From the NCBI RefSeq assembly GCF_052425735.1, contig NC_135759.1, positions 21,204,001 through 21,268,000 on the forward strand: a DNA stretch of 64,000 bases, in the 5' to 3' direction. The notes below the pieces were generated by a model. It ran no database searches. It was not told the origin of the DNA and worked only from the letters and a program-made list of their open reading frames with translations. Source of the DNA: Oculina patagonica (taxonomy: Eukaryota). Within the stretch, counting starts at the first letter, position 1; each line of letters starts with the position of its first letter. Below are positions 1 to 53,699 of the stretch, one piece after another. The translations under genes were made by a program, and so were the position numbers.

Positions 1-290
1 ACAGAGATCTTTTCATAAGGTTGCTTTTTTCGGTATAAGTCAATTCTGGTGCTGCCTCTTTTCTTGTTAATCTTGTACTTGCGTCCTCTGTATAGCCTGA
101 TGTTCGATGCTCGTTCTATGAACTGAACAGCTTTGATACCTCCCTTCTCTGCCTTCTGTGCCGGCCTTGGTCTTCCTTTCCTTGTGAAGGCGATGAGGCT
201 GTTGTTGTACTTGACGGAGCTGAATTCTGTGTAAGCATTTTCAGCGACACGATCCGTGAAAAAGCAGTTCTCCTTCCACTTGCCTCGTTC
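1..290 (-). CDS. FGF8: FGF8-like A, coding exon 5, runs off the window (ERGKWKENCFFTDRVAENAYTEFSSVKYNNSLIAFTRKGRPRPAQKAEKGGIKAVQFIERASNIRLYRGRKYKINKKRGSTRIDLYRKKQPYEKIS...)
   Basis: Acceptor tctctttaacag (AG at 292-291); frame open to position 1; AFTRKGRPR matches the FGF8 heparin-binding segment. Confidence 0.95.
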
Positions 291-361
291 CTGTTAAAGA
301 GATAATTAATGTCAATCCTTTGGCCATTCAGGCAAATTAATAAGTGGGGTTATGTGTTAAT

Positions 362-586
362 TAAATCACTGAGAAGATAAAAAGCGTTCTCTGGTAAAAA
401 ATTTAAAATTATTAGCTTTCGATAGCCTGACTGCTGTCTTCGACGGACTTCATTTTTATCCGTCGAAGACAGCAGTCTGGCTGTCGAAAGCTAATAATTT
501 TAATTATTTTTTACCAGAGAACGCTTTTTATCTTCTTACAATGAATCCTGGTATCGGATCTTCAATATTTTTATAAATCACTGAGA
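362..586. mobile_element. Fold-back insertion, probable Penelope-like element remnant, in FGF8-A intron 4
   Basis: Near-perfect inverted arms of about 77 bp (372-447 and 459-536); 13-bp direct repeat TAAATCACTGAGA at 362-374 and 574-586; hammerhead-like motif in the arms. Confidence 0.6.
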
Positions 587-3500
587 TTAGGCACACAATA
601 ATACGTTAACAGGCTTAGGGGCTCAGACAGCTGCAGCCGCTGGTTTCGTGGTAAGAAACGTATTGTGGTCTTCCTAGATGGGATGCTGCTACAACCCCTG
701 ACATAAGTCTTGCACTTTAGTTGAGCGAAAAGCGACCTTACACACACAAGATTGTAAAGAGAGGGACCAACATTGATAGGGGGTACTGGGCGATCCTACA
801 GCAGTACAGGAATGAAGATTGCTAAATTGAATTCGAAACTCTTTGTAATCGGGCAAGTTTTTAACAACTTGCACAACTATTTTTGTCTGGGTTTGTAGTT
901 CTTCGAAATTCAATTAACAACGGGAAAATTTGCGGGGCGCCAAAAATCACCAGGGCCATTTTAACAACACTGTGGCACTGTGAAATTAACGCGCTTTGCC
1001 TATAAAAAACATGTAAGCTATGGCCTCGCTCGCAAACTGAACCATTTGATCTCCAATTTGACGCATTAACGATTAGGCCACCGCACCTCCCACAAAGGAC
1101 TCACGCAATTTATCAAACCTGAAAATAGTTCGGTGGGGTAGAAAAAGGCCAAGGGATAGCAATAAATTAGATAGGAATATCTGTGGTTAAGACTGACTTG
1201 GACAGATTGTAAAAGTTTAAACCCTTTGCAATATGAAGTTAAACTCTCATTGCAAGCTATCTTTTGATGATTCTAGGCAATCTTTAAGCTCGTGGGCGTA
1301 AAGACAAGTTCAGTAACTTGCTTTTTCCCCTTTCGATAAGACCACCGAATGTGCAAAACAAATCTCATTTCAGAGGACAAATAACATAACTGAACTCGAG
1401 ACTCTTTGTGATTTGTGTCTGTCAAACAGTATTTACTATGTTTTACTGAAGTGGAATTCTAGCAATGTTGTATTGTTTTCCTCTACGTAACCATGGGAAT
1501 ATTAAGTTAAAGCATAACCCGGGTAAAGAACAGTTTATTTGCCGTTGGGGTCTGAAAGTTAGCTGTTTTTGCGAAAGTTAAAAGTTGGTCAATTTGTCGC
1601 TTCCTTTGCTGAAACCACCAAAAATTCAATCACTGTTGAATGTGCGTTACTAGTTTGCAGGCGACAAACACAACTAAATTGTGCTATTTCCTTTAGTAAA
1701 CCATCACGCTTGGCAAACACCTCCCACGCTCACAAGTAAAAAGAAATCGGCATCGCAAGTGACATCAGAAAGATTAACTTGTACAGCGGAGATTTTGCGG
1801 TACCTAAACTGTGCCGTTTGAACTTTCCGGGCGGTGCTTTCTGCTATTGTGTAGAACTGTAGGCTTATTTGAATGCACTGGTTTTCTCTCCCGTTGAGGC
1901 TGTCTCAACTTCACGACTGTTTCACGCTGTTTATGTGGGCAAACGGGCGAAATTTCAAACTGATTTCGTCTGTGTCATGTTGTGTTTGTGTATTTCGGAG
2001 CACGAATGGTTCAGAGCTGTAGTCCCGGACATCAGTAAATGAAAATCTTTCCAGTCAGTTTCAAAGATGACGTTTGAAGTTTCGCTATTTGGGCTGAAAA
2101 CCCCTTGAAAAATGTTTGGTGTTATTAAAATTTGATCAGAATGTCGACAAAACGTGTCTTCGCGCATGTCTTAGACCACTTGCTTCTGAAAGCGAGTCAG
2201 TAATCAATTCAATCCAAAAATATAGCGAAACTTACAAAACTCCACTGAGTAGATGGCTAACTACACAAGTTTAAAACAAGAGCTATCGCTGACTGAAAAC
2301 TAAGTCTTCAAATGCTTAATGTATCGACAAGTAAAAAGGTAAAAGACAGTGCGGGCACTCGTCAGCAGTGTAAGCGGCATACCGTGATTTTATTCAGAAA
2401 TTCTTGCTTCTGCAAAGCAATGACAGTTACTGTGTTCCCCGAGTCAGTAACGATTTTTAAAACCAAATCTGCATGAGTAGCTACGCACGTCAGCAAAACA
2501 TGCACAAAAGTATAAATTACACTGTTTCGGATAAATTTTCAGTTAGTAAGGTTTAAAAATTGGTTTTATACACAAACTAAGCAAAATCAACTCATTCAGT
2601 CTCGACCCCTCTTATACTGATTTTCAAACATTTTCTTGTTTTAAAAACTCTTTAACATCAAAGTGATATCACCTATTTTTGTCACTTCGCTACTTTCACT
2701 TTCCAAGTCTGAGAAGTACCTTCCTTCTAGAAAAATCTTCAGCACCGAATAAACTCTTGCAAGAGTTAATTAAATGCTGTCCCATTTTCTCTGAAAAATA
2801 CTTTCTAAGCGCGCCCCTAATTGCTTTTTCAATAGCTCCTTCAATTAAGCTAAAATAAATCAAGGCGTTACCGGAATGATGACTGAAAAATTTGAGTTGG
2901 TGGAAAAATGTCACATTGACGACAAATGGCGGGGCAGGGGTTACCGTGACTTAATTGCTTTCTTCGCGATAAAATGATGCATTGCTTCTTGGACATTTAC
3001 AAACGTGCGTCATCAGGTTTTATTTATGGCAAAAAGAGACGAGTCGGGAAAGGTGTTAGCTAGACAACATTCCAAACTAACGTGCACACATTACATAGGC
3101 GTCCACCATCCTGACATGCGTGGCATTCCTTTAACATAAGTCACTAAGGAAATGTGGCTACCCAACAACATGTTTGCAGGATTCTAAAGTCGTTAGCAAT
3201 CGTCATTAAACTGAATTTTCGAAGCTGACGATCCGAATGCAAACCAATCATTGAAAGACTAACACTTGGAAGGCTAGCAGTGGAAAGACTTACAAAGGAG
3301 GGCAACTTAACAAATTAAGTGGTTTCGCGCGCCCGCCAACGCAGTACAACAGTTTAGAAAGTAATTTTCACTTGAACGTTCTTGAAAGACTGAAACTAAC
3401 GCGTGGAGGAAGGAAACTATGGAGGGAAATACTACCGATTGTTCTTGTTTCCTTTGATTTAACTAATTTTTAATCTGAATCAACTTGGAAATGAAAAGAT

Positions 3501-3887
3501 TATGACAGTTACAACGAGGGCACACAACTTAGAAAATTGTCACAGTAAGAAAGTCAAGTAAACTTGCCACTAATTTAAGGACAGTTATTTCAGCTAACCT
3601 ATATCCGAGTTGACAAAGATGGGTACACTTTGAGGAGTGATTCTTTTGTTTTTGAGCACATTGTGACAGTGTTTTCAAAACATAAAACGAAAATAGATTT
3701 AATCACATAATTAGAATAGCCATTATAGGCAGGTTCCGGTTCCAAAAACGTCCTGAGCAAACATGACATTCAAAACTCTTCCCAACTGTTACCGACTCGG
3801 TGTTCCCATTGGTGCATATTTTTCAAAGGCCAGCATGATATATTAATAATAATATAATATATTTAGTTATTTTACTCCCTAACTTAC

Positions 3888-3991
3888 CCTTGCTCTCAAT
3901 CTTCCTCGCTTGTCCACACAGAGGTAAAAGTTAGTTGCTGAGCCCCGTATCCGAACTCGTCCAAAACTTACTGATTCGATCACCAACTTGG
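3888..3991 (-). CDS. FGF8: FGF8-like A, coding exon 4 (AKLVIESVSFGRVRIRGSATNFYLCVDKRGRLRAR)
   Basis: 104-nt central FGF exon between tttattacag and gtaagt; matches FGF8 AKLIVETDTFGSRVRVRG..YICM. Confidence 0.95.
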
Positions 3992-6019
3992 CTGTAATAA
4001 AAACAAAAGAAACAAGATGAGAACACGCTTGCAAAAAAATACGTTTGTTTATAGGCCTTCTCCTTTGAATGAAGCTGCCACTCATAGTTCATCGCCACTT
4101 CAGGCCTTTTGCTTATAGCTTCAAACTACGCCGATTTGCACGCACAGCTTTAGAAAGTTCTAGCAGCTTTCCATATACAAGATATATTATACAAACATTA
4201 TACAAATAAAAGAGACATTTATGATTATGCTCTGTTCACCGGTATGGTTTGACACTGAGAGCAGAAATTAAAGTGTCCGTATTAAGGTGGTGTCTTAATA
4301 ATAAGGAAACCTGTGGGCATTTATTAAACAAAGAACACTAAAAACACTATTCTGGTATAATAACGGGGTGTCTGTATAAAAGCAAGGTTGTATCAGAAAC
4401 TTAACAACGCTCATCTAGTCAGAGCTTTACTCTTGGTTAATAACATGTAGTCATGATCAGTGGTTGGCAGGTATGTTGAAAAGAAGTTGACAGAGTTTCG
4501 GTGAGAAAGACCAGTTGGAACATGTAGCTTCTACATGCTGAAACGCTTTTGCCCCAAAAATTTAAAACAGGATAAAATCGGCGATTTTTGATACTCAGGT
4601 CGCACCGAGTGCAGCAAACTGCGGTGTTCTGTGGTTTCGCCCCCTCGTCCCACAACAAAACAAAGTCAATAAAAGATGCCTCTCATAAATGGCAGCAACG
4701 CAAATCCGCTCCGTCAAGCTTTTCTTTGTTGTTTACTTAACCGATGAAAGGTTCGAATTAGAATGTTACAATCGATAAATTCGCGACTGTTGGAAGTGTT
4801 AAAATGTAGTCATGTATCTGGATAAAGAGGTCAGTTTTGTGGCGAGGCAAAGCTTCACCGTCTATATTTGTTTTAATTAGGACAGTTTGCTTCATGCAGT
4901 GGTAATAACTATTAAACTCTCTTCGTGTGGAGCAGCTCTTTGTTGCCTGTCGCGAAATCTCTTTCATGCAATTAACGCAAAGAGGATTAAGTATTTGAAA
5001 CGGGTTCTCGAAAGGTAACAATAAACCAACCGCCGCGAGGCGTAAGTCTGTTAACTAAAGACGCACTCCAAAGAGGTCGATTAATCACTTCACTTTCAGT
5101 GAGGTAGACACACGGATAGAGATGGCTGGCACGGTCATTGAAAAATTCTTTAAATCCTCCTCCTTTCAGATTTGTGTAAATAGAACACCCATCGCTTGAC
5201 AATCAAATGATTTGTCGTCAAACAATATAAAAACTTGAATTTTTGACGAGCTACTGTGGAGGGAGTTACTTATAGCTACGTCAAGAAACAGGGACACTTC
5301 GCTTGTCTGAAGATAGCACGAACGTTCTTAAGAAAATTGAGACATGGCATCGATGCTAAGGTGTAAAAATAACCAATTTTAATTTGTGTTTCCTTTCAAA
5401 GAACCTGCCTTCGTACTAATAATAGCAACAATTAACCTTCTACGTAGGCGATAACTTGAATTACTGAAAAGAATGCGAAAAATTTCACCGTTTTCCGAAA
5501 GTATTAACAGAGAGTCGTTTTGCTGTGAATTTCGGAGCGTTCACTCACGTAAAGCTTACCTCAAATTAAATAAAAAACAGAGAACAAAACATTCTTGTGG
5601 TTCAATAAAACAAAAAGGAAAACCATTTAAATGTCTGTGCGATGCGTTCATGCACTTGGTAAACAGAAAAAAACAAAGTCAACTTAACTTGGAAAACTAC
5701 AGAGAAGACAAGTTATGCTAAAAAAATACTTAGGCGAAAACGACATTAGCGTTAATTTCGAACAATCCTCTGCGAAGGATATCCAGCGAACAAATCTTAT
5801 TTGGCCCTTTCACCGAGAGAAAAAGAGAGCACGATGCGCCAGTAGCCATTTGAAGAGCGTGTTACTGCCGTAAAAAGCTGTCAAGATTCCGAACAGAAGA
5901 TTAAGACACCGCTTTTACAATAAGCATTAAGAAAGGCGACAGACAAGTAATAAACTCCAGAGTAAACAAGTTTTTACAATATTAATTATACAGTAACATA
6001 ACAGTTTACGAGTTGGTAC

Positions 6020-6197
6020 CGTATTTGTCGCCGTCTTCACCGATGGCATCCACGCTTCTGTCAGCCTTGATTCTAACGTGGCGGCCACTATTTCTCGAGT
6101 AGAGCTGAATGAATCTGCGAAAAGGTAAACTTTTCGTGTCGCTTTTCGTCTTCTGGTTCGCATAAACATCGTCGAAAACTCTCTTTTCTTCCGGTTT
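6020..6197 (-). CDS. FGF8: FGF8-like A, coding exon 3 (KPEEKRVFDDVYANQKTKSDTKSLPFRRFIQLYSRNSGRHVRIKADRSVDAIGEDGDKY)
   Basis: Acceptor ttcttcttctcag; 178 nt; phase 0 to 1. QLYSR..SGRHV..EDGD matches FGF8 QLYSRTSGKHV..EDGD. Confidence 0.95.
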
Positions 6198-6310
6198 CTG
6201 AGAAGAAGAAAAACGAAGAAGCGATAAACCGGATAAGTTTCAATACGTGAGAGAAAATGCAAATTTGTCAAAATTAAATTTTGAACGAGGTTTGTGTTAG
6301 TTTCCTTTAC

Positions 6311-6356
6311 CAGATCAAAATTGCTTTCTTGAGCAAGTCCATCCGGCAACAGCAAG
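6311..6356 (-). CDS. FGF8: FGF8-like A, coding exon 2 (LLLPDGLAQESNFDL, end of signal peptide)
   Basis: Acceptor ttttcttgtttcag; 46 nt; donor gtaaag; phase 2 to 0. GLA|Q is a plausible signal-peptidase site. Confidence 0.85.
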
Positions 6357-6593
6357 CTGAAACAAGAAAAATGACGTCAATTAAGGATTTGCTAGATTGT
6401 TAAAGCACAGAAACTGTTTAGTACTTAGTCAAGTGAAAAATTGTTGATGCTACTTCAGGAAGGCGCCATTATTCATTTGACTAGGCGCTAAATTGTAATC
6501 TTAATCGATCTCGTGTTCAAAAGGAAGCTTCGATTCGCTCGTCTTCTCAACCGAGTCTGAATTGCTATATAACAACCAGCTGTATATACTTAC

Positions 6594-6643
6594 TGGAGCG
6601 TGAGTAGCGTAAACGCTCGCAAGAGATTCAACCCCAAGGCCAT
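6594..6643 (-). CDS. FGF8: FGF8/17/18-like ligand A, coding exon 1 (signal peptide, MALGLNLLRAFTLLTL(H))
   Basis: ATG at 6643; 50 nt, ends in phase 2 at a GTAAGT donor (6593). Hydrophobic; joins the next exon in frame. Confidence 0.85.
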
Positions 6644-6652
6644 ACTGCACTA

Positions 6653-6689: not shown

Positions 6690-9600
6690 ATGCGTCACGG
6701 GTTAACACCCGTTACGTATACCGGTAAATCGCGCGCCTTTGGTACGGTGGGAAATGAGAAGCGAGATTGGCCGCAAAGAACAATTAGGATGTGTTAGCGG
6801 AAATGTACGACAAGTGTAACCAACTCCTACTCAGCGAAGGAAGGAACCTAGTCAGTGGTCTATCTACAACGACCCAAGAAAACATAACAAAGTTGATCGG
6901 AGATGTATAAATGACGGAGACACAAGTCTTGCCCATTAATAAGGTGTGCCCCCTGTACTTGCTAAGAACAATTAACTGTAAATGTAATTAAGATGCTTAT
7001 CACAATCTTTTATCGTCGGCCGCTGGGGTTTGACCTTTCTAGGTGTCAATCTAAGCTTTTTACGCCTTAATTAAATTTTAAATGTTGAATTGTTACGCGC
7101 TGCGGTTCAGAGAGGTTTGATGACATGACATGGGTGTTTAGAGGCAGGTCTCTTTTGCAAGCGATTTGCGGACCACAGCGATCAAAGGTTTGCGGGTGCT
7201 AAAACGCGAGCTCAGAGTAAATTCTTTTCAAGACCATTAGAGGTTGCAGCGGCGACATGAAGGGTTCGTGTGAATAACGTATCGATTAAGTCTGGTCTGT
7301 TATTGGGCTAAAAGAACAATATGTCAATAAAAGTGTCTAAAAGCGGCCGACTTATTTCAGTTAACAACTTGAAAAAAGAAGCGGATGTTTGGAAGATTAG
7401 ATGACCTGCGATATCAAAAGCTATTTCGTAGCTTGATTATTCAGCTATTTCTAGTTCGCGAGTTTGTTTTTCCTGCGCGTAACAAAAGATACAAAAGTTG
7501 TTATTGCACTCATTTACTGGCACATTTGTCGTACAGTTTTAGATTTTGACGGATTTAGGTCGATTAACATTTACGACGAAACAATTTAAAAGCGTGAAAA
7601 GCAGTTAACCTGCTACTAAACTGAAATATGAGATGGAGGATTATGTACAGTGAGATAATGGTTAGAGTAAATTAAAGCAGATAATAAAAATGTCCAAATT
7701 ATTGGCTAATATACAATGTGAACCAAACAAGTTACAGGGTCCCACATCACTGCTGTGTTACAGCTCATTAAACTGTGTAAACAAAAAGCCAAAGAAAACT
7801 AATATCCTCTTTTTTGTCTTATCGACAACTGATATCATCTATACGCGCGTGTCGCGGCCAACATTCCGTAAGAGGAAAAAATAAGTCATGAATTTTCCAT
7901 TGAAAGTTCTTGTATAAGCTTGGTTAATTTGACAGTTTGCATTTTTTTCAGTGACCAGAAATGATATCTCGGAAAGCACTGCTTTGAAGGCCTCCGGGCG
8001 GCATCTCTTATACCGAATTCTAAAAAGGTGACAATCTGTACTTCCTTCCAGCCACTCGGAGTGCTACTTATAGCCGAAAAATCTCAAACCTGTACAAAAC
8101 ACCTTGAAGAATTTCCCTTCGGTAAACATGCTCCTTGCAAAGACTCTTTGTCAGTTTCTTTGCAGTGGTTCTCGCCGCAGAAACTTCGCGACGTTTTCTA
8201 AAGGGAAATCGCTTTGGAGCAATGACGTCACCGGGTTTGAAGGTTGACCGGGGACGATGTTCATAATTGATTTGCTAAGATTATAATCTGTGTATGTCTT
8301 TATTACTGTAATAGAGTTGGATGATTGCTGAGTTTATTGCACTCTCGAGTTAGACGGTTTGCCTTACGTAGAACAAAAGAATGTTGTTATGATACATTAG
8401 TTGAAGGAGTAAAACAGAATAAAAATTAATTGAATTTTGAGTGTTTGAGCTTTTATCTTCAAGTTATGTTATGAGAACAGGGCGTGAGCATTTTATCTGC
8501 GTAGAAATTTTAAACTTGGGGTCTATCTTGATTTCTCAGTGCTTATCTCCAAGAACTGCCTTTTGCAAATGATCAGGGTGTAAAAGAACCTTTATCTTAT
8601 GCTTTTAAATGTGAGAATTTACAGAGCTTGTCTCCACCTAGCATCGCTGGCTCCTAAACTCTTCTTACACAATCTTGGCACCGGATTATCCGGGAGACGG
8701 CGAATCAATTGAAAAAGTATAGCTTTCGAGAGATCTTAGTATAATAGGATATAACTGGCTATTAATAACAAAGTGGGGGAGGGGAGGGAGGGGGTGGTAT
8801 TCTGGCATGTGATCAGCAGGTAACCTTCTTACAGAAGAAATTCCTTTTAACGAAATATTAGTTATTCTGTTTAAAGTATTCATTTTGCTTTAGAGAAGCG
8901 CAAAAAACCATACAGGCGATGTACTTGTGTTATAATACTGTACTGATAAAGGCACTTTACACATCCCCACAGAACCCTTCAACAAGGAGTGTTGCCGGTA
9001 CCTGCTATCGGGCGCACGTCATTTGTAACATTGCAACTCTCTTCCGATCTCTCCGTGTTGATGATTTTTAAACGGAACTCAGTTTTCGTTTTTCGTATCT
9101 CGGCTGATTCCAGACAGTTCAGCTCGTCAAAGAGAAGGCTTATTTTGAGATTTCCGTTCTGTTCACTCAGCTATCACCGGTGACCGCGTATCGATAACTC
9201 GGCGTATGGGAGACTTCCGATGGGGTAATAGGCCAACTCGTCGAAGGATACATCAGATTTACAAAGTCCATCATAAACTCTCATCTGTTATCTCAACTTC
9301 TCCCAAGGCGCTTCGAGAAATTGCAGGCTATCGTGTAATAACTGAAAATGCTCTAAATCTCGCGTCCTCTCGTGGACACTTGATACGATGGCTGGATAAT
9401 AATCCATTTTGCGCACATTTTGATTTTCACAGCATGAGCCCATTTTGCTTCTTGTAGGGTCATTTCGGAGGATTTTTATGAAAGTGAAAACTGCTTCTTT
9501 GGCAGACTCCGGGCGCCAAGTTTGAGCTGTGACATATATTGTTACATGGGAATTCTTTTCATGAAAAAGGCTGATTCCATGTCAAGGCAAATGGGGAGGC

Positions 9601-38357: not shown

Positions 38358-38397
38358 GTGAGAATTCAGTTTCTCTTGTATTTGACTCTGTAGTACA

Positions 38398-39917: not shown

Positions 39918-40050
39918 GGTGTTACTACAATTAACGACATCTCGGATTTTCTACAAATTACGAAAACGTGTTATTACAGTTTGCGATAGGTGCGTTATTA
40001 AAAAACGCAATAGCTGTTATTACAATTTACGACAGGTATTACAACACGAC
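39918..40050 (+). repeat. Degenerate tandem array of TTATTACAA(A/T)TT(G/A)CGA-type units
   Basis: About 5-6 imperfect units of roughly 22-25 bp; probably the interior of a non-autonomous element. Confidence 0.55.
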
Positions 40051-43000
40051 AATCCACGACAGAACAAGCGAAAGCTAACTTTAAACTTTTGTAAAATTCA
40101 GTGTTTACGTTTTCTGTCCTTGATCCTCAATTTTTAAAACCTTTGATTAGGTGCGAATAGAATACAAGGCAAGGCACATTATCAGTTCTTTCGCAGTTTG
40201 GTGACTTGGGAACGCGCACAGAATTTTTTGCGGTTTCCATTTTCAAACAGTCATCAAGGTATTGCCAAATAATTAGTTCGAAAGGATTTTTTACACATGA
40301 GTACGTACCCGTGGCAAGGAAAAGCATATACTTTGGACTAACCTCCCGGACTGTCTCAGCCCATATGCTCAATACTGTGAGTGCCAAAAACAGTATAATG
40401 AAATTAAAAATACAACCTACAATCTTTGACAAAACCTTGGCACAATTGCTGTTTTTCTCACTTGAAACATGAAAAAGTTAAGTTTTTCCCCCTCTCTCTC
40501 TTTGCAATGTTGCGTAGCATGCAAAAAATAATGCCTTCAATTGCTGCCTACTTTTGTTCACAAACTAAAACGCACTATACAAGAGGTTTGGGCACATTGC
40601 GCTATCAAACAGTGAAACGGGTGGGTGTGTCAACGAGTTTTGTCAAAGATTGTAGCCATGTCCTTCAAATACAGTCATAATTAAACTACAAAGTTGGAAA
40701 AGGCGGGATTACTCCAGATTTCTAGCTACAATATAAAGCAGTTTTATTATTTAATTACAGAGTTTGCCATGAGAAAACATGAAATTTGTCGAAAGGCCGT
40801 CCCAGGCCCTTAATCTAGGTAATGCGGTATTTTGCGAAATGAAACACAGTACTTGTTTTAGTTAATCAACCTGGGTGATAACATTAGTAGAGCACATGTT
40901 CCAGGCAGGTTACTTTGTAAACATGACATTTCAGACCTTAAAATGCAATGTTTCGAAAAACACAATACTGTTTTTATTTTCACTGCACGAGATTCTATTC
41001 ATGTCATGTATACCATAAATTGTTGTCCCACGGACTGCTTGTGCGTCACTTCATGCTGCGTTGCACAAGATACATTACAAAGGGTTCAAGGTTTGTAAGA
41101 AACAATATGCTGCGGTGGTCGACTGTATATTCCGATCATGAGGCTACCTTATGTTTTTGAAAAGACAAATGGTCCCCTTTTATTCCTCCTAGATAACCAA
41201 CAGGCTATTGTGCTGAAGTTATTTAATTTTCCATGTCGTTGGCTGCTCGTATCCTTCACTTGTTGACTCTGACTGGTCGGTTTTCTAATCCTTTATTTTT
41301 GCAGCCCCCATTGTGGGCCGTCTGGTAGTCGATCATTCTGAGCGCGGTTGTACGCCCATTGTGACTGAACATATATTTGGCAAAGAATTACCAGGCGACC
41401 TATGGGCTTTGAATTTGCGAAAAAAATACGGAAAAATGCTCAGAGGACAAATAAATTGGACAAACAAATCATTAAGCGGTGAACTCTACGCAGTGTCTGC
41501 ATTCCTATTTCTCGTATGACGTTTTAACGTTTTATGTTTTACCCTGTCTGATGTCTGAGACAGCAACCTTGTCTGAAACAAAGCTTTTTAACTCTGTTTT
41601 TCTATCCTTTGGACACGAGTCAGGCCTCCCAGGTTGCTCTCCTAGCTATCTCTATGCCTACACCAGTTTTCACTTTTTATTATGTGCTCTAACAGTGACA
41701 TATTTAACTTTATTTCTCTCTCAAAATATTTATTCGTATTACAGTTAGCCAGTCTAAAGAATAGATGACGATCTGTATTGAGGTCTGCATGTAGAAAATT
41801 GTAATGAAAAAAAATTAAGGAAAAAAGGGGATATGATTAACAGAGAAAATACCTTAATTACATTTTGAGATTTAGTTTTGTTTTACTATATTTTTTTGTA
41901 GCCGAGCTTACTCCCACCATATAGATCCCGCTGATGAGATGTACTGTCATTCATTCGTCACTGTTCGTCTTCGCAGGGGCTTAACGTCTTTTACCTAATT
42001 CGATAATTACTTGTCTGTATTCCAAGGCGCGCTGCAGGAATTTGATGCAATGGAGAAGACAGTCTGTCAACAAGAATTAGCAGAAGAGACTAGACGTACC
42101 AATGTAATCTGCAGCCAACTTGCATGCGACTGAGTTAAAAAAGGACCGCTAGAAATTGAATCGGCGAAACTCTTTTAGTGAAGAGGACTGCTGTTTTGCG
42201 CAGCCCATTTCTTTTCGTTACACCGTGTGATACCTTATAACTGTTCACACTTGACATCATACGCCTGGTTAAAGTGAAGTATTGTTCAGAATCTTGGGTG
42301 TGAGCAGGCCATTCCGGCAGTTTGTTAGCTAAACTTCGGTACAGTTGATAAGGCAAGCTAAAAAATAAACCGCTCTTATTTTTGAACGAAACTGTATAGC
42401 CCACTGAGATATTCCTTGGCTGAAATCAATGGGGTGCTCCACAAAGTTTAGTAGCCACATCAGCAGTCTAAAAATATATCTTAAGTCCAAAATTAAACAG
42501 CTATTACTCAGGTTGACAATGATCTTGAAAACTTGTTAACAAGCCGGCAAATGACGTTCAGTGACCTAATGTTTGTCCCATATGAAAGCTAAAATCAAAA
42601 GACTTGATAAACTTTGGTTTTTGGGCATTTGATTATGTAATGTCTTTCACATTGACGAGATTGTCCAGCAATAGTGGCATGTTTCGAGTACAGGTAGGCA
42701 GCAAGCAACAGTTTGATTTGAACAGTTGTTTAATTTATTAGAATATTCTCACTGCCACTAAAGAATTCGAGTTGCTGAGAAGAGTGAAAATCCCCCATTC
42801 AGTGTCACTCACAGCAGAGACCCGGTAAAACGCCAGGGAGTTTAACATTTTTACTTAGCTTAAAAAAACCAAACACGCTTTATGCCAAATTAAATTTACT
42901 AAAATTACAATTTTTTACTTGTACAAGTTTGCAGTATTACTTAGTCAAATGACTGACCAGGAAAAATATATTATGCGCATGCGAGCTAGATAAAATCAAA

Positions 43001-44059
43001 GCTAGAAAGTTAAACAAAGGCTACGCCGAAATTCAGTAGTGTTATATATAAAAGAAGCTTAACCCCACCCTTTACAATAAAAATTACAGCAGCTGTTTTG
43101 GCTAATCAGCAAAGGCAAACAAAAGTGAAGATCAGTAGACCTTAAAATTCGAACAGTTATAGTGCAAAACAAAAATATGTTTCGCTCATTCATTTGCAAA
43201 CGTGAGAAATTCCGGCAGCTTCAAAGAAATTTATACATTCATATCAAGTTTGCAATTTATATCGTTCTTTTGTTTCTTATAACGGAAAAGAGGTATAATT
43301 TTGGTCAACAACAACAACAACAACAACATCCTCTTTATTTTCCTTATCAATAAAATTAAATTACAGAAATTGTTATATAAATATTACTAAAGATAAGAAG
43401 TTCTGGCAACCCGAAATAACCACTAGGTTAAAAATGCCGGGTTGCCAGTTTACAAATTGATTTGTCAAATTTTGGCCGGACACACACACGTACACACGGA
43501 CACACATACAAAATATAATATAGAATATAATATATACCAGAAAGTAAAGAAGAAAAGAAGCTGAAAATTACACGCGTAATCTATTACCATAAATAAAAAA
43601 TATAAATGAACTGAACAATGAAGAATATTAGAAACATAATGGTAAGGCGTTGCAAAAACAGTGATATTATCTTAATGTGAAGACAAAGGAATGATATGGA
43701 AGGGAAGGGTCGCTTTACTGTTTCGTAGAACTTTTAACACTTCGTCAAAGATGGAAATAACTTTCGAAAAAACTAACCACCTGACAATCAAATCCCTTCC
43801 ATATCATTACTCCTCGGGCGATAATTAGAAAATCTCAACATACGCTTTTCATTTGAATAGATCGATAGCTGGGTGTTAACGTAACTGGTTTCTAGTGTTA
43901 ATCGATTGTCGACACGCCTTTGCCATTTTTAGAATTTCGTGAGTTGTGCCTTTTCCACGTGTGGGCACTCCCAAATAATGACTTACCTAACTTATATAAG
44001 CACGCTATCATGAAGACAATTTATGCGATAGCCGATTTTTTAAACCTTTGAGAGATAGC

Positions 44060-44505
44060 AGGCTTTAAGCACGGGCAACACAAGATGAGAGTCACCGAAA
44101 GTTGACGAGAGTTAAACTTTCATCGACTACCATTCGAGCGAGGCTGAACGAGGATGCGAGGGATGGCACGAGAATTGATAAACATCACGCGATGCGCGAG
44201 CGAAATCTTTCGTCCTCGGGCTTTCGTCGACTGTCACGAACATTTACACACTTTCAGATTCGACGAGTTTAGCTAAGAGTTTACGAGAGTCGAGGAGAGC
44301 GTACTTATAGTTCCAGCCAAATAACGTAATAATAATAATTTATATATTTATTAAAATAGCGCTATTTCCAAAAAAGGATTGCCCACTAGCACTTTACAAC
44401 AACTGGCTTACAAATGAAATTACATGGCTTAATTACAAATAACAAAATGGGAGCGAAAGTTTGAGCTCTTGCATTAGGCTACTCTTATTATAGTTTGGCC
44501 CGAGA
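44060..44505. mobile_element. Decayed non-autonomous DNA element with GAGAGT repeats, interrupted by a reversed LINE-like (TAA)n tail
   Basis: Repeated GACGAGAGT/GATGAGAGT units; GTTTGGCCCG end near 44494; AATAATAATAAT..TTTATT..AGCGC block near 44328. Confidence 0.4.
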
Positions 44506-44870
44506 TTTATATATTGTAGCAATTATCGCTTTAAATTTCATGCCCTGTCATCGAGGTTCCGTTACCTACAAAAATAAATTGAAATTTTGGGATATCTGGC
44601 AAGCAAATAAACCCATAATGCGATTCTCCTGTGCTGCATAACGCGTCAAAGGTTTTCAACTTCGGTTAAAAAGCCTAATCTTCCTTCCCCCATCCCGATC
44701 CCTCCTCCAGCCACGCATCCCTCCCTCACAAACAGAAAACGACTTGAACACTAACAATAACAACAATACAAAAGCAACAAAAAAACTAAACTGTAGTTAT
44801 ACACGTAAAGTTATAAGATGGATGAATCACCTCATATTCATTTATTCTTTCCCACGCATTAATTTTCCAG

Positions 44871-45146
44871 GTAAAGAAACAAAGGTTTGCCCTCATGAGA
44901 AGATGCATTTTTAACGAAGAGATCACATCTGAGGGCTACTACCAGTACAAATCTGTTAGATATCCAGATTTATACATCGGTTTCTCCAAAGGCGGGCGCC
45001 CAAGGAACGGAAAAACAAGCGCCAAGAGGCAAATCTACCGTCATTTTACACCAAGGGTGCTGGGGAGAAGAAAACACCGACGAGAGGCTAAAATCAGAAA
45101 AATCATCAAGTTGCTGAAGCAGACACTTCACAGGAGACGGGCATAG
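44871..45146 (+). CDS. FGF8: FGF8-like C, coding exon 5 (VKKQRFALMRRCIFNEEITSEGYYQYKSVRYPDLYIGFSKGGRPR...HRRRA); 229 aa in total
   Basis: Acceptor aattttccag; C-x-F-x-E-x6-Y signature; YIGFSKGGRPR; TAG stop; AATAAA at 45210 and 45356. Confidence 0.95.
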   Translation, partial: VKKQRFALMRRCIFNEEITSEGYYQYKSVRYPDLYIGFSKGGRPRNGKTSAKRQIYRHFTPRVLGRRKHRREAKIRKIIKLLKQTLHRRRA

Positions 45147-46967: not shown

Positions 46968-49900
46968 CTAATATAATGAACTGATGCGCGTTTTCCGCGC
47001 TTTTTCGCGCCATAAAGGGAAGCTTTGATTGGTTCAAGCTTTGATTGGTTCTTAGAAGATAAATCTTTACAGTACTATTGCAAAACGGATATCTTAGTGT
47101 TGTTTATTTGGATCAGATTCTTATGCTGCCAGCCTAGAAAGGAATCGATGTTTTATAATTAAAATTTGGCCTAGAAGGGACTTTACTTTTCAATTATTAG
47201 ATCCTAGAATCGTCCCAGAGGTCGAAGCATTTCTGGCAGCGACAAGATTCTGATATCTAAGAGACGGCAATATTATACCATTTCTCGTTGGTCTGGGAAG
47301 AAAAATGGTGCAAATATGGATCAATATGATCACACAGTCTCCACAACCGAGGCTTCCGAGGAGCAGGAAAATGAGTGGGTACCAGGGTATTGGTGGTCGT
47401 CAGGAGCCCATTACTAGGAGCGTGCAACATTACTAGATGGGTTCCTGTGGTCGTGGGAAGAGAAGGGAATTCACCGAATGATCTGCGTAAACAACTGTTC
47501 ATTTCACAAGAGAATACGAAAGATATTTATCGTAATTGAGAGAGTTGCTGCCGCAATGGTATCAGATAAAACTACCTAGCTGGCACGATGTCATAATTTC
47601 CTGATAATTTCTGAAGCCTTCTAACTATTCCATTAGATAGGCATTTGTCTATTGTGCTCGACCAAATGTCCAGCAGTGCTAATCCAGTGATTATTACGCT
47701 GCCCAAGTTATAAAATGTGACAATAACAAGCTTGAAATTCCGTCTACAAACTGGACACCCTCTAGGGTGTCTTTTTTTCTCAGGCCGAGGTAGTCACAAA
47801 TGGATGGACGCCATCTTGATTCAGTCAGTTAGGTATCCTTCCGGTCTTTTTCGAGGCTTCTCTAATACTCCAATACCTCTAGAAATCCTTCAGATTTCCG
47901 GATTTTCGGGCTAAGCAAACAGCACCTGAATTAACAAATTAATCTCTTGTCAATTTTTGTGTTCCAGAGAAAGAAAAAAACATTGTCAAACAATGCTAGC
48001 ATTGCTGCGTTGTAGCAAACATCGCCTGGAACAAAGTTTTCTCTCCCATAATTACGTCAAAAGTGCTCATTATCCTCAACCTCTATTTAAACCACGTAGG
48101 CGCTGTCCAGGATTCAATGAAAGCCGTAACTTATGCACGTGACTCATCAATCTTCATTAGACCTTTCACTTCTTGTTAATGGTTTGACACCAACTTGGAC
48201 AAGCTCCACAACCAATTCCAAAAGCCGGTCTGTTTATTAAGCTGTGTCACGTGGTGTCTCGACATGATAATGCCAAAGATTACAAAGAGGCATTTCCGAG
48301 CATACTGACCACACGTTTCTTTAAAGCCACGTGCAAGCCTTCGGACCCTTTACAACGGCCACCCTGAGAACATTTTACTGGTCATGCTGCAATATGATTA
48401 CTGTACATTCATTAAAATGATTAATTCTTAATATTCCAAGAAGAAAAACGCTGGCTATGGGCATACAGGCCATAAGAATGACTGTTGTCAAGAGGTAATT
48501 AAATCATTTTTTAAAACAAAGGCAACTGATAAAGTTGATAAAATATTGCAAATAATGTCCTCTCCAGAGTGTATAATCATCATTGAGGCTATTGACATCG
48601 CTGAAATAAAACTGCGGCCAGTTTTGGCTCTGCAGTGATTTAAAGGTAGCCGCAAGATTGTAATAGGTAGATTGTTAGCGCTCACTTTAATTCTGTGTGT
48701 GGCTTCAGTTTGTCATATCCCGAAGTTAAATCTGTTGCTCTTATGACGTCTTGTTACAGGTTGTTATGCACACAGGGTAAGGGTGGTGGCCTTTAGTGGA
48801 AGTTAATAAACTCAAAAACTCGATGAAAACAATGTCGCGAAGTAAAAGAAATTTAATTATAAGAAGGTCTGCAAACTACAAAAAACCTGACACTTGTACT
48901 TGGAGACTAAATTCTTATCTGACAGAGGTATATCCGGGTCAACGATTTTTAATAACCTTATTTCCGCTGCTTTCATTTTCGCCGCCATAAATATCACGTT
49001 GTAAAAAAAAAGAGGGCGAAGAAAATTATGGCCTTTTTGTTTGGCCTGCTCGTATTACTTTTCAAGGAAGGAAAAAAAACGTGGTGTTTCGCATTAACTT
49101 TTGCTTTGCTGCAGAAACTCGAAGTGATTTTGGCAGCAAAAGCTTAACCTAAGGATTTTAAACAAAGGGCTGCTTTGTGTTCCTCGTTCTAGGCTGTTGT
49201 TTGATCAGATTGTTTCTGCATTAATTCTTGTTTTGAATTTTCTCATTTGTTTTACTTCATAACCAACCGGAAATTATCCTTGTACATAGTTCGACTGCAC
49301 TGCAGGAACTCAGGTTAGATGTCAGCCCACAGAAGTCTGCAGCAGGAAGCGTCGCCGTTAATTTCATTAGATAATGAATTTCCTATCTCTCAGACTATTT
49401 ACACTATTTTTGCAAGGGATCATTTTAAAAGTTTGTGGTAGACCGCAACACGCAGTGTAACAAAGCTTTGATTGTCTATCTCGCTTTTCCACATTGATTT
49501 TGCTATTCTGCCAAACGAATGCACTCCCTCGATTTCAGTTGATCAATTATTAAGACAGTGCTTTCAGTGCCGAGTATTGACATACTTTGGGAAGCCATTG
49601 AATTCCTAAGTATGTGGAAGATGACACGCTTGTTGTTGTGAAATAAATTGATATGCTAGTCTGCGGAATAGAAATGTCGCACGATTTGTGAAGTAGGACG
49701 CCCTTACTTATCAGGCAATCTGGAAAAAAGTGAAATCAGTAATTCAAGATCGTGAATTAACGGTATTATCTTGATTTTAGTGATTGTGGCTCATATCAGG
49801 TCATTTTGCGGCTTGCTATGACGTCTGAAACTCTAAAAAAAGACACAAAAACTTCTCCGGGGCTAAATTAAAATTAATACAAAAATATCAAAAGAAGTTC

Positions 49901-52514
49901 TACCGTGAATTTGTCAAAATATTTCTCAGCGAATTCCTCAACATTTTATTTTTAACGCTAAACAATTTAATGTTTGATCTAAAAAAAAATGATAGATCGC
50001 ACATCCCAGTAGCTTTAGAGCCATTGGGTTTCAGCCTCAATATTCCTTAAAATTGGAAAGTTCGGTCCAAATGGCTTGACTTGCGGGCGACTTATAATGA
50101 ACCATTTCCTGCTAATGGTTTATTAAACGGAAAAGTGACTCGCCACATCGTCATTGTTCATCACTCTTTCTTGCGCCGCGTGGGCAATATAACGGGAAGC
50201 ACAATTATTGAAGCGAACATCACCTGACGTAATTGTTTTTTTTTTTTTCCTTTCAGCGTACATTTTGTCCACCGAGACGTGATTTTTCCCTCATTTTTTC
50301 GCGAAAACGTTAATTTTCAATTTAGAAGTTTCTTTGAATTGCTTAAAGTCAATTTCCGACGTTCAAAGAATTTCACACGCACAGGTGCTTTCGCGATCGT
50401 CACGCGATTGCGCGAACCCGCGAAACATTGCGCAGTCACGTTGAAATGCAGTTGTCTTTTTCTATACACTTTTATGTCGATTTATATAGCTAAGCTTATG
50501 TTGAAATCGCGTTGTAATTGTTCACCCCCATTGGCAATGTCGTATTAACGGATACAATCAAAGAAACGCGCGCGAGAGAGATCCGAAAATAATGATACTC
50601 TATTCCTTTTGTTTTTCTTAAAAAAAATAATTCTAAGTAAGAGAAGGTAAACCGGAAAACGACAAGATGTTTTGAAGGTCCTTAAGCGAATTCCTTTGCG
50701 AGCTCACGAAAAATTACTTTAGCATGTCCTGGTAGAATTGCAAACAGAACGTGCTTTGTTTGGAACATAAAAATTCCGATGCAAATTGTGACAAGAAAAA
50801 GAGTATAAACGTCTGCTAAACCAAGGGTAATTAAAACGGGTTTCCAAACAAATGTACACAAATAAATGCATTGTCAAAATTCGTAGAAAAAATGCGCTAA
50901 ATGTCGACCTTGGAAACATGATGATCAGCTTAAAAAACATCGCTAAGACAAACTTTGCTTAGTAGACTGTTCTTAGTTTTGTCTCTAAACTATATTTTTA
51001 TCCAAACCAAAGAAAGCAAAGGGGTAATTAGGGACATCAATCACCATGTGTGACCTTTATGAAGTTCTGTGTATCGTGAACTCATGTCATGAATATGGAT
51101 TTCTGAAAAACCGCAAAACACGATAACTTTAAGTAGTAGTTTCTACGTATTAAAGTGCGTATGTTCTTCTGTAATGAATACAATACTATTCATCATAGCG
51201 ACTTTTTTTTGCTGGCTTACAAATTTGACAGTTGTGATTGAAATTTTAACCTCGATTAATCGGTTTATAAGCCAGGAATTTATTTAGCCAACCAGCTGCT
51301 CAGAAGGCAAAGGCAATAACTTTTAGATGAAAATAGCTCAGCGAAAGCAATAAATCTTGTTTGGCTCTTTGCGAAATAAAAATAAAACAACAACAAACAT
51401 TCGCACGATCTGAGAACTTCGGGTGGAATTTTAATACAATACTGCTGCGAAGAGCTACCTCGCTTTGGGAAAATCAACAGAATTAAATAAAGTACTCAAA
51501 GACCCATCATCTCATTAAAGTATTATAAACCGGGCTGGGTTTGGGAAGCGAAAAAAATTATTGGGCTTTCAAGAAGAAACTCGTTCTTGCTGAACCGCGG
51601 GTCGCGATCCCGAGTCACATGTATTCAACAGAAAATATCAGCAAGCGGGCTGTTATCGATGTTTACAGGAACTCGATAAAGGGCTCGGTCCGATTGAGAC
51701 AGAGATCACGTCTCTTTAGAACTCTATATGTAAAAGAAACACACCAATTATTGGATTTTGCATTCTAAATAGGAAATATTTGAGCGAAAAAATTGACCCG
51801 AGTCACCCCATGCCCGTCAAAACAAGAGAGATTCTTGCCGAGCTTTGACCATGCTGTGCGGTTATGCGAAGGTTTCTTCGGTCACTAAATATTGATATTA
51901 CTACTTGTAGGTTAGCGATGCAGCCCGATACCGCAAGCACTGTGAATTCTAAGTTATCACTAATAAAGCGTGCATTCGAGACTTAAAGAATATCGCTCTG
52001 TTGCCTTTGAGATTTGTTTTGAGTAATACAAACTCCCGGCGGCGCGCGGGAGTTCGAGTAACAGTTACAGACGTATACGTTTACCATCAAACGCTATTAA
52101 CTGTACAAGAATTTTTAATTGTTTATCTCCGAGAAAATTCATGTACACAGTTTTCAGTTTATAGAATTAGTGTCGAAGAATCCGATGGGGGAAAAAACTG
52201 CACAGAAAAGCCACAAACTGGCTGAATGAAAGAGGCTGTTCCTACTTTAACATCAAATCGGTCTTCTCAGCCGATATCACTGACAACAGAAGATAAAAGG
52301 ATTTAATTTTTCCCCCGAGAGCTTCGAATAATTACGCGCTGACTATCACAGGTATAAAACAGAAGGCCTTCTTTAAACAAATTTGATATTTACAAGGAAG
52401 GTATAAATAAGGCATATGTATTTGATAGACAAATTTCAATTTGAGAGCTCGATACGAACCCGCTAAGCTAAATTATAAATTAACCCTGGCCCCGCACTGT
52501 TATAATGACACTTT

Positions 52515-53267
52515 TCAGACGGGATCTTTGGGTCTTCTTTGTCGCTGCCTACTCGCAGTTTTCTGTCTTTTATAACAACCACACACTTTTGAACATCCTT
52601 TGAGAGGCAAATAGCAAAGGAGGCAAGGCATGAAAATTGAACAAGCCGCCAAACACCCCCATCTGCCGATGCAAGATGTCCGAGGGGGACCGCACGAGCA
52701 AGGGTGATCTGACGCACTGCCTTCATCGAAGGAATCCTTTGAGCAGTGATACAACACTGCTTTAACCCCGCACATACAGCTTGCGTAGTCGATTAACACG
52801 TCCACGTCCCGCTTACAGCAAAACAACTTGATATCGTCGTCATCTTCACTATGTTTGCATTGGAGTACATTACTACGTCGCGATTGCACCGGTGTTGCCG
52901 GACCTGTGGGTTTCGGTTGTGTAGTTACAACTTGTGACGGTGGACTGCGTATAGTTCCTCCCGTATGTCTCCTAACAAATGCGTTAAACGTCCTGTTAGT
53001 TGCTGGAGTCGATAAACGGAGCCGATTGTCACGATCCGCGACCAAGATGGGTTGGCGAGGTGTAGTAGTCGCCGTCCGCTTCGTAGCGGCCGCAATAACA
53101 CAATAATCTGAGTGATATTCATCCTTGTTCACAATCGTGTCAACTTTGCTAACAGTATTCTGTGGTCGAATGCGATGTTTTGAGTCGTAATCCAAGCTCC
53201 TTTTCTCCCAAACAATTGTCTTTTCCAGTGGGTTCTCGTGTAGAGTGACCGCTGTCTCTACCGCCAT
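52515..53267 (-). CDS. SPRY: Sprouty (RTK/FGF feedback antagonist), single coding exon, 250 aa
   Basis: Cys-rich SPR domain IDYASCMCGVKAVLYHCS..DHPCSC..RWGCL..FMPCLLCYLPLKGC. N-terminal NKDEY resembles Spry2 NTNEY. No EVH1 domain. First in-frame ATG after an upstream stop is at 53267. Confidence 0.95.
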   Translation of the reverse strand: MAVETAVTLHENPLEKTIVWEKRSLDYDSKHRIRPQNTVSKVDTIVNKDEYHSDYCVIAAATKRTATTTPRQPILVADRDNRLRLSTPATNRTFNAFVRRHTGGTIRSPPSQVVTTQPKPTGPATPVQSRRSNVLQCKHSEDDDDIKLFCCKRDVDVLIDYASCMCGVKAVLYHCSKDSFDEGSASDHPCSCGPPRTSCIGRWGCLAACSIFMPCLLCYLPLKGCSKVCGCYKRQKTASRQRQRRPKDPV

Positions 53268-53416
53268 GAAACATTGATCGCCATTCAAATGGACGTCTTG
53301 AAAAACAATTTGGATTAATTTCGCCGGGATCAGGCGTTCTCGAAGTCACCCAGATCCAGCCAATGAATGCCGAACGCCATCATATGGCCTCAGCGAACGG
53401 GAGAACTACGGGCGAC

Positions 53417-53599
53417 CTGAAAAATAAACCCAAAGTACGTTGAGCAATTGAAACCCTTGGGACTAAATGAACATGAATAAAGCTTTCATCAATTAACATT
53501 ACGTTAATCAAAATACAGTTTATATATAGTATCAGAATGCAGAGGTGAAGGCCATACAGCTGGAGTTGCCGGAGAAAAGTAATATTCAGTTTTTCTCAC
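53417..53599 (-). other. Predicted 5'UTR intron of sprouty (non-coding first exon above 53600)
   Basis: Donor tag|GTGAGA at 53599 and acceptor tttatttttcAG at 53417. A 5'UTR intron before an intronless CDS is the usual sprouty layout. Confidence 0.6.
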
Positions 53600-53699
53600 C
53601 TACACCGAAGACAGAAAAGATACAGCCAGCTAATTGAAAACTCGCACGATTGATTGTTCTCGAATGCCCAGCGAAAAGTTCCGTGTTGTGAATACAGCA

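Follow-up and report, generated by a model that had tools for sequence, protein, structure and literature searches.

The 64-kb stretch of Oculina patagonica DNA analysed here (the window) carries three FGF genes, FGF8-A on the minus strand and FGF8-B and FGF8-C on the plus strand, together with a sprouty gene on the minus strand. A sequence-only reading had proposed three FGF8-type genes and sprouty in this arrangement, and all four were found at the places and on the strands it had given. It had also taken the organism for a probable cnidarian; indeed, NCBI protein ACROYT_G006059 of Oculina patagonica, a scleractinian coral, matches the sprouty open reading frame at 100% identity. The genes and the conserved non-coding sequences around them are as follows.

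1..6643, minus strand: FGF8-A, splice-site model with coding exons 6594-6643, 6311-6356, 6020-6197, 3888-3991 and 1-290
6967..7090, no strand: non-coding block about 330-450 bp upstream of the FGF8-A start codon, from blastn against Nematostella
20516..20558, no strand: short block upstream of the FGF8-B start codon, from blastn against Nematostella
20766..26121, plus strand: FGF8-B, coding exons 20766-20818, 20978-21017, 21109-21271, 22630-22736 and 25672-26121 (stop included), modelled along the full-length orthologue P0018
22737..23168, no strand: strongly conserved sequence in the FGF8-B intron right after exon 4, from the Pocillopora alignment
33558..45146, plus strand: FGF8-C, splice-site model with coding exons 33558-33607, 33710-33800, 33888-34056, 38254-38357 and 44871-45146 (stop included)
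48912..48991, no strand: block of about 80 bp in the spacer between the 3' ends of FGF8-C and sprouty, from coral alignments
51022..52514, minus strand: conserved sequence that adjoins the sprouty stop codon, within a collinear 2-kb blastn block shared with Pocillopora (70.7%)
52515-53267, minus strand: sprouty coding sequence, single exon, 250 aa, Pfam PF05210
53268..55805, minus strand: sprouty 5' region (5' UTR, intron, promoter), from its deep conservation

The three FGF genes share one architecture. Each has five coding exons, two small 5' exons followed by three core exons, with identical intron phases (2, 0, 1, 0) and canonical AG/GT splice sites. A subdivided first coding exon, giving five coding exons instead of the usual three, is a trait of vertebrate Fgf8/17/18 genes. 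FGF8-B (270 aa) and FGF8-C (229 aa) are complete; 222 aa of FGF8-A are visible, its C-terminus and 3' end being cut by the start of the window. In all three models the N-terminal methionine is followed by a hydrophobic stretch, a putative cleavable signal peptide of a secreted ligand. The exon-4 pieces match the Pfam FGF family PF00167 above the curated cut-off (E 1.3e-9 for A, 6.9e-7 for B and 7.9e-9 for C), and the full-length orthologues carry PF00167 as well. FGF8-C has a TATA-like motif some 100 bp upstream of its ATG.

By their best hits, A, B and C are assigned to the FGF8/17/18 class, in agreement with the subfamily originally named for them. For the C type, the orthologue P0079 matched FGF18 (8e-25, 91 bits) and FGF8b (4e-24, 89 bits) in the PDB far better than FGF2 (8e-8, 35 bits); exon 5 of FGF8-C by itself also ranked FGF18 first, by a small margin. 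For the B type, the search covered 1.8 billion proteins, and 20 of its 150 best representatives were looked up. Fourteen of these 20 had an informative source name, and 13 of the 14 were FGF8, 17, 18 or 8/17/18, among them proteins of amphioxus, Ciona and Saccoglossus and NvFGF8a; the sole exception was a 'putative FGF1' of Actinia. Our FGF trees, which included no other FGF subfamilies as outgroups, gave no resolution at the deep nodes. Published trees put four Nematostella genes in the FGF8/17/18 subfamily with low support (PMC3420111).

At the level of individual genes the trees separate three clades. FGF8-A groups with a Desmophyllum FGF and NvFGF8A (support 100/97) and is by this placement the orthologue of Nematostella FGF8A. 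FGF8-B groups with an Acropora 'FGF18-like' protein, Exaiptasia and a Nematostella 'FGF18' (100/97) and is the orthologue of the Nematostella gene lying head-to-head with FGF8A. FGF8-C groups with P0079, P0097 and Oculina ACROYT_G006076 (100/100) and belongs to a third anthozoan FGF clade distinct from A and B. Coding genes B and C are under purifying selection, with dN/dS values against Pocillopora of 0.08 and 0.25, respectively, at a dS of about 1 in both cases.

The sprouty protein has the C-terminal cysteine-rich SPR domain at residues 157-243 (PF05210, E 2.1e-23, 83 bits against a cut-off of 25) and is 77% identical to Montipora and Pocillopora-cluster proteins, both named 'sprouty homolog 2-like' by NCBI. 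The EVH1/WH1 domain, which separates SPRED from Sprouty, was not detected; Sprouty was the sole Pfam family on the 257-aa open reading frame. Vertebrate sprouty requires an N-terminal tyrosine motif of the NxYxExP type for its inhibitory activity. Across seven anthozoan sprouty proteins D49-x-Y51 ... Y55 is invariant, a candidate counterpart of the vertebrate motif.

FGF8-A and FGF8-B are arranged head to head, with 14,122 bp between their ATGs, and 7,436 bp separate the FGF8-B stop from the FGF8-C ATG. FGF8-C and sprouty are convergent, tail to tail; their stops are 7,368 bp apart, matching the earlier figure of about 7.4 kb. The 50 longest remaining stop-free stretches in the window (88 aa or more) gave no credible Pfam match, a scan that short exons could escape. 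The 64 kb contained no tRNA and no Rfam family, and we found no FGFRL1 or FGFR exon in them; the blocks conserved with Pocillopora at 55.8-64 kb have stops in every frame. At the sensitivity of the Pfam, tRNA and Rfam scans, the claim that the window holds only four genes thus stands.

This gene-poor region is rich in conserved non-coding sequence. Between Oculina and other corals, blocks across the locus retain 70-90% identity where dS is about 1, and those at 80-90% despite this divergence are under constraint. The sequence in the FGF8-B intron falls inside a 769-bp block with 81.8% identity to Pocillopora at a synonymous divergence of about 1, and its first ~90 bp are kept in Nematostella too (blastn). 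Upstream of FGF8-A, the block at 6967..7090 is 75% identical over 124 bp to Nematostella L008:9540-9661, immediately upstream of the NvFGF8A gene, and is probably promoter or 5' UTR. The counterpart upstream of FGF8-B is a short, weak match (84% identity over 45 bp to L011:17023-17067, blastn). The sprouty 5' region is 77.6% identical to Pocillopora across 3.4 kb and 70-75% identical to Porites; the blocks 53417-53533, 54211-54337 and 55107-55204 are also kept in contigs whose sprouty is only 63% and 47% identical. In the spacer between FGF8-C and sprouty, most conserved sequence either adjoins the stop codon of sprouty or is found in the half nearer to it, so that it could simply be 3' UTR, and 51022..52514 is a probable sprouty 3' UTR. 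The block at 48912..48991 (89.6% identity with Pocillopora, 80% with Porites) may be the far end of this 3' UTR or an enhancer. Each gene seems to be served by a promoter and by flanking conserved non-coding sequence of its own.

The array is found again in Nematostella, where OW051990.1 carries A (-), B (+) and a third FGF (+) in the same order and orientation as in Oculina. The trio is thus older than the split of stony corals and sea anemones. The third Nematostella FGF joins the C clade with an SH-aLRT of 87 when five long-branch rows are left out, and forcing it together with the C clade was not rejected (p-AU 0.51). As a separate observation, the motif SVRYP.W is common to this protein and the C clade.

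The position of sprouty is more variable. The sequence-only reading had suggested a search for FGF-sprouty linkage in other anthozoans; close pairing is present in three cases and absent, within 10 kb, in two. A convergent pair of sprouty and a C-type FGF is found in Pocillopora (5.9 kb), Porites (7.8 kb) and the ENA contig ctg66198 (3.8 kb), a more distant contig whose sprouty is only 47% identical and whose DNA similarity to Oculina is down to a few short blocks. The distance is therefore 4-8 kb in four taxa, Oculina included, and the alignment of Oculina and Pocillopora keeps sprouty, C and B collinear. The 10 kb flanking the Nematostella array on each side contain no sprouty, and two unrelated genes come after the third FGF; on contig ctg18600 (L004), whose sprouty is 63% identical, the first 10 kb downstream of sprouty lack an FGF. 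On ctg66198 (L013), sprouty has an FGFR-type kinase exon 9.7 kb upstream; this exon, seen on a single contig, could belong to another FGFR-like kinase family. Taken together, the FGF-sprouty link is inherited within Anthozoa and not a peculiarity of one genome, and the locus is a real, conserved anthozoan synteny block.

How the adjacency has been kept is a matter of interpretation. We give about an even chance to the following scenario: an inherited anthozoan block in which sprouty follows FGF8 in trans and adjacency is kept by constrained regulatory DNA. A tandem array of three FGF8/17/18-class genes of the A, B and C types would have arisen before the stony coral-sea anemone split and would have retained its order and orientation since, with sprouty and the C-type gene convergent and facing each other by their 3' ends. 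Induction of the feedback inhibitor sprouty by FGF/ERK is established pathway logic in bilaterians and has been proposed for Nematostella. In the coral, sprouty would likewise track FGF8 mainly in trans, secreted FGF acting via FGFR and Ras/ERK on sprouty transcription. In a gene-poor region dense in constrained regulatory DNA, selection would act against breakpoints, much as it does in genomic regulatory blocks. With trans induction and constraint on breakpoints, ligands and inhibitor would need no shared enhancers.

We consider it rather improbable, though not far-fetched, that a single early event in Anthozoa brought sprouty next to an FGF8-class gene and that slow rearrangement alone has kept it there, with no function. 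Scleractinian genomes generally keep microsynteny well, and conservation among three coral genera is therefore weak evidence of selection; the taxa that share the adjacency are related and do not count as independent observations. The missing adjacency in Nematostella and ctg18600 would fit such a history, as would a spacer whose conservation, lying mostly at the sprouty end, may be just 3' UTR. However, the pairing persists on ctg66198, where little other DNA similarity is left, and constrained non-coding sequence is plentiful in the region. If a genome of about 25-35 thousand genes is assumed to hold 15-20 or so FGF genes, random arrangement would put an FGF directly next to a single sprouty gene in about 0.1% of cases; this rough estimate speaks against chance, although one chance event need happen only once.

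A co-regulated module, in which the ligands and sprouty share enhancers in one contact domain as the physical basis of synexpression, seems unlikely to us. The retained adjacency and the non-coding blocks conserved both in the spacers and within the genes are what one would expect of it, and NvSprouty expression overlaps that of FGF ligands according to Bertrand et al. 2009, where a conserved feedback loop is proposed (PMC2754479). Moreover, fgf8a, fgf8b, fgf8/17-like and sprouty all fall together in Nematostella twist mutants (PMC13539428). The authors of that study attribute the joint fall to lost signalling tissue (PMC13539428), and it fits cis and trans coupling equally. On the other hand, FGF8-C and sprouty converge, and about 20 kb separate their start codons (33558 and 53267), which puts their promoters at opposite ends of the pair, and the conserved upstream sequence of sprouty (53.3-55.8 kb and beyond) lies on the side away from the FGFs. 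ERK-dependent induction in trans already accounts for co-expression, and Nematostella shows co-variation with a sprouty that is not adjacent, which argues that adjacency is unnecessary for it. Very improbable, finally, is the idea that the coral cluster is the best-preserved remnant of an ancestral eumetazoan block of FGFR-type receptor, sprouty and FGFs in a shared regulatory landscape, with the vertebrate SPRY-FGF1/2 pairs and the proposed FGFR/FGFRL1/FGF8 linkage as dispersed descendants and L013, where less than 20 kb holds a C-type FGF, sprouty and an FGFR-like kinase exon, as another survivor.

A signal and its own feedback inhibitor in one cluster are rare, and if the linkage were functional it would offer a simple cis-level means of matching the doses of ligand and antagonist. 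The orthology of the three anthozoan FGF8-class genes is now fixed and their array is older than the coral-anemone split. Since sprouty adjoins the FGF8 array in corals and does not in Nematostella, the two provide a natural contrast in which the effect of adjacency on co-expression can be tested. What we describe is, as far as gene order and alignments go, a conserved synteny block that extends a published observation; any regulatory role is a proposal.

One parallel to the locus is the genomic regulatory block, which is likewise gene-poor, contains developmental regulators and keeps its gene order for long, with non-coding conservation far above neutral. Such blocks are defined by elements acting across a neighbouring gene, whereas the likeness of the coral locus is one of order and conserved sequence alone. 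In vertebrates, SPRY1 lies near FGF2 and SPRY4 near FGF1, at distances of hundreds of kb, and FGF1 and FGF2 form the FGF1/2 subfamily, different from FGF8/17/18. As in the coral, sprouty is near an FGF ligand, but the ligand is of the FGF1/2 subfamily; for the two linkages to share descent, both subfamilies would have had to sit in one ancestral cluster. Our literature searches found no published treatment of these vertebrate neighbourhoods. Within anthozoans, passages of Bertrand et al. 2009, citing Matus et al. 2007, place NvSprouty on the same Nematostella scaffold 51 as FGF8a, FGF8b and FGFRL1 (PMC2754479), so that linkage of FGF8 and sprouty is already published. Like Oculina, Nematostella thus has FGF8-class ligands linked to a single-exon sprouty; in the corals, however, the C-type gene and sprouty are direct neighbours, convergent and 4-8 kb apart, whereas in Nematostella other genes intervene. 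The same passages, which treat anything under 10 Mb as 'close', do not describe a three-gene FGF array (PMC2754479), and in the literature searched the tight adjacency of coral sprouty and FGF8-C appears to be undescribed. The ancestral bilaterian linkage of FGFR, FGFRL1 and FGF8/17/18 that has been proposed (Birnbaum, Popovici and Roubin 2005; Bertrand et al. 2009) also joins parts of the FGF pathway to an FGF8-class ligand. That proposal concerns receptors at the megabase scale, whereas in the coral the partner is sprouty and the scale is that of kilobases.

The 64 kb hold 0 N at a GC content of ~39%, and all ORFs are short except one of 257 aa. This ORF encodes sprouty: it carries the Sprouty domain (Pfam PF05210, E 2.1e-23) and matches the NCBI protein ACROYT_G006059 from Oculina patagonica, a scleractinian coral, at 100% identity, which bears out the "probable cnidarian" of the sequence-only reading. 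The 50 longest other stop-free stretches of the window gave no credible Pfam match, there were no tRNAs and no matches to Rfam families in the window, and an FGFR or FGFRL1 exon was not found in the window search. For the Pocillopora-conserved blocks at 55.8-64 kb, a coding role was considered and rejected, as they contain stops in every frame in both species. At the sensitivity of these searches (Pfam on 50 stretches, tRNA, Rfam, frame check at 55.8-64 kb), the earlier count of four genes in 64 kb holds. Upstream of sprouty, 56294-57225 contains unusually long stop-free stretches (<=217 aa) on both strands and in several frames; they have 0 Pfam matches, and only one short Pocillopora-conserved block (57544-57678) lies nearby.

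The FGF loci were located using the window's own FGF-like exon as tblastn query, which revealed three paralogous exon sets, and the three core exons of each gene were set by splice-site inspection. No signal-peptide exon ending in a phase-0 donor was found, the putative signal peptide being spread across two small exons. The 5' end of B was determined via a full-length orthologue (P0018, 270 aa), those of A and C via the same pattern.

Genes of the window (coding exons in order of transcription)
6594-6643, 6311-6356, 6020-6197, 3888-3991, 1-290, minus strand: FGF8-A, 222 aa seen, C-terminus beyond the window
20766-20818, 20978-21017, 21109-21271, 22630-22736, 25672-26121, plus strand: FGF8-B, 270 aa
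33558-33607, 33710-33800, 33888-34056, 38254-38357, 44871-45146, plus strand: FGF8-C, 229 aa
52515-53288, minus strand: sprouty ORF, first ATG 53267

A, B and C share a structure of five coding exons in which every splice site is canonical AG/GT and the introns are in phases 2, 0, 1, 0, and each product has a hydrophobic N-terminus; A is 47% identical to B and 38% to C, and B is 41% identical to C. A and B are arranged head to head with start codons 14.1 kb apart, B and C are separated by 7.4 kb, and C and sprouty lie tail to tail. The stop-to-stop distance of the latter pair is 7,368 bp, which confirms the clustering of three FGF8-class genes with sprouty about 7.4 kb from the C stop, as proposed from the sequence alone. 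Comparison of Oculina with Pocillopora gave a dN/dS of 0.08 for B and of 0.25 for C at a dS of about 1; both genes are functional, and unconstrained DNA is expected to approach saturation at this distance. That C is a decaying copy was rejected in view of its dN/dS and of a frame and splice sites that are intact in two genera.

With the B orthologue as query, phmmer covered 1.8 billion representatives and returned 337 relatives, and source names were looked up for 20 of the best 150. Fourteen of these 20 were informatively named, 13 of them as FGF8, 17, 18 or 8/17/18, including FGF8/17/18 of amphioxus, Ciona and Saccoglossus and FGF8a of Nematostella; the sole exception is an Actinia "putative FGF1", an automatic label. 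Among solved structures, the C-type orthologue P0079 matched FGF18 (8e-25) and FGF8b (4e-24), and FGF2 far more weakly (8e-8); with C exon 5 alone, FGF18 ranked top by a narrow margin. A subdivided first coding exon is a trait of vertebrate Fgf8/17/18, and the predicted FGF8/17/18 class of A, B and C rests on these best matches together with the subdivided first exon. In a maximum-likelihood tree the three genes fall into three well-supported clades: A with a Desmophyllum FGF and NvFGF8A (100/97), B with Acropora "FGF18-like" and Nematostella and Exaiptasia "FGF18" (100/97), and C with P0079, P0097 and a second Oculina gene, ACROYT_G006076 (100/100).

This second C-type FGF8-class gene of Oculina (P0120) shares a 46.5-Mb chromosome with sprouty (ACROYT_G006059), the locus tags being 17 apart, so the window may cover only part of the FGF8-class neighbourhood. 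In the scyphozoan Sanderia malayensis, two FGF8-class proteins (P0039, placed near the B clade, and P0156) bear consecutive EukProt numbers, gene5233 and gene5234, a hint that such genes may be paired in tandem outside Anthozoa as well. The Nematostella B orthologue has four N-terminal isoforms in NCBI (P0186, P0038, P0187 and P0189, with 286, 285, 276 and 275 aa), recalling the alternative use of 5' exons in vertebrate Fgf8.

In Nematostella, OW051990.1 carries at 6.61-6.67 Mb FGF8A (-), the B orthologue (+) and a third FGF (+; "FGF8b-like", P0209), with spacers of 7.7 kb and 6.7 kb. Order and orientation are those of A, B and C. The position of the third gene was not resolved in the free tree; its constraint into the C clade was not rejected (p-AU 0.51), and a reduced tree, from which five long-branch rows (Rhopilema, P0152, P0142, P0184, Ciona) were removed and to which the FGF of the ENA contig ctg66198 was added, united it with the C-type genes in one clade (SH-aLRT 87). 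The motif SVRYP.W is common to both. Array order, constraint test, reduced tree and motif together argue that the three-gene array is most likely older than the split between Scleractinia and Actiniaria. At the locus of the third gene (L012:15180-15764), one unbroken tblastn match spans the counterparts of exons 4 and 5 of the coral genes; apparently, the C-type gene of Nematostella has lost the intron between them.

The linkage to sprouty was compared across five loci or genomes.

Sprouty and its FGF neighbours (percentages: sprouty to Oculina)
Pocillopora (TARA scaffolds; name from protein cluster), 77%: sprouty, C and B in order and orientation as in Oculina
Porites, 70%: last exon of a C-type gene 7.8 kb downstream of sprouty, convergent
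ENA ERZ25073755 ctg66198 (L013), 47%: three C-type FGF exons 3.8-10 kb downstream, convergent
ctg18600 (L004), 63%: no FGF within 10 kb downstream
Nematostella: third FGF followed by two unrelated genes; the 10 kb flanking the array on each side hold no sprouty

The DNA of Pocillopora is collinear with that of Oculina, and its C and sprouty stops are 5.9 kb apart. The sprouty-C adjacency extends to Pocillopora, Porites and ctg66198 but was not seen within 10 kb downstream on ctg18600, and Nematostella shares the trio but has no sprouty neighbour within 10 kb of it; a Nematostella sprouty was not recovered, profile search included. On ctg66198, sprouty is flanked by the C-type FGF 3.8 kb downstream and, 9.7 kb upstream, by an exon for an FGFR-type kinase activation loop (140-262, plus strand), for which FGFR1-4 account for all of the top 60 PDB matches (E about 1e-18 to 1e-16); simple motif searches gave no further kinase exons on this contig, and the exon may belong to an FGFR-like kinase rather than a true FGFR. 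Montipora capricornis has two sprouty-domain genes, "sprouty homolog 2-like" (P0010 and P0249), on one 76.5-Mb chromosome, the second protein (301 aa) matching the window's sprouty in the Cys-rich domain only.

The region is rich in conserved non-coding sequence.

Conserved stretches
22737-23168, about 430 bp: B intron directly after exon 4, 82% with Pocillopora
48912-48991: C-sprouty spacer, 90% with Pocillopora, 80% with Porites
53268-55805: sprouty 5' region, 70-78% with corals, short blocks kept in ctg18600 and ctg66198

Further blocks lie in introns of C and in its upstream sequence, and two, upstream of A and of B, are kept even in Nematostella. The B intron stretch could act in splicing or as an enhancer, or could be an alternative 3' end; conservation of the initial ~90 bp reaches as far as Nematostella, and the frame continues from exon 4 into the intron for 58 codons (ORF 22569-22910). 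In the C-sprouty spacer, the conserved sequence is all on the sprouty side. Contigs with sprouty homologues have a recurrent length of about 5.2-5.3 kb; if these are transcripts, the sprouty 3' UTR would measure ~3.6 kb and end near the 48.9-kb block.

Sprouty is an FGF/ERK-induced feedback inhibitor, and its induction in trans would account for co-expression with FGF genes. FGF-sprouty feedback has been proposed for Nematostella (PMC2754479). Mutation of twist in Nematostella lowers fgf8a, fgf8b, fgf8/17-like and sprouty jointly (PMC13539428); as sprouty does not adjoin the array in that species, such co-variation seems not to depend on adjacency. C and sprouty converge from start codons separated by about 20 kb, and the conserved sequence upstream of sprouty lies on the far side; this layout fits independent promoters better than a shared one. 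Ranked on comparative sequence data, the leading explanation, to which we give an even chance, is that the block was inherited and that its high density of constrained regulatory DNA has kept it together. Pure inertia, in which the adjacency was inherited without function, comes second and seems rather unlikely. The shared-enhancer module of the sequence-only reading gains from the linkage inherited across corals, a part of that interpretation that is supported, but is improbable given Nematostella co-variation without adjacency within 10 kb and a tail-to-tail layout that speaks for independent promoters.

Bertrand et al. 2009 (PMC2754479) describe FGF8a, FGF8b and FGFRL1 as linked in Nematostella; on scaffold 51 they place NvSprouty, at 1.09 Mb, between FGFRL1 and FGF8a. 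FGF-sprouty linkage as such is therefore already published. In the searchable literature we found nothing on SPRY-FGF synteny beyond this paper, nor the tight convergent coral adjacency or the three-gene array. The orthology of the three anthozoan FGF8-class genes is now fixed, and the published Nematostella linkage is extended to a far tighter one, conserved across corals, in which sprouty adjoins a C-type FGF.
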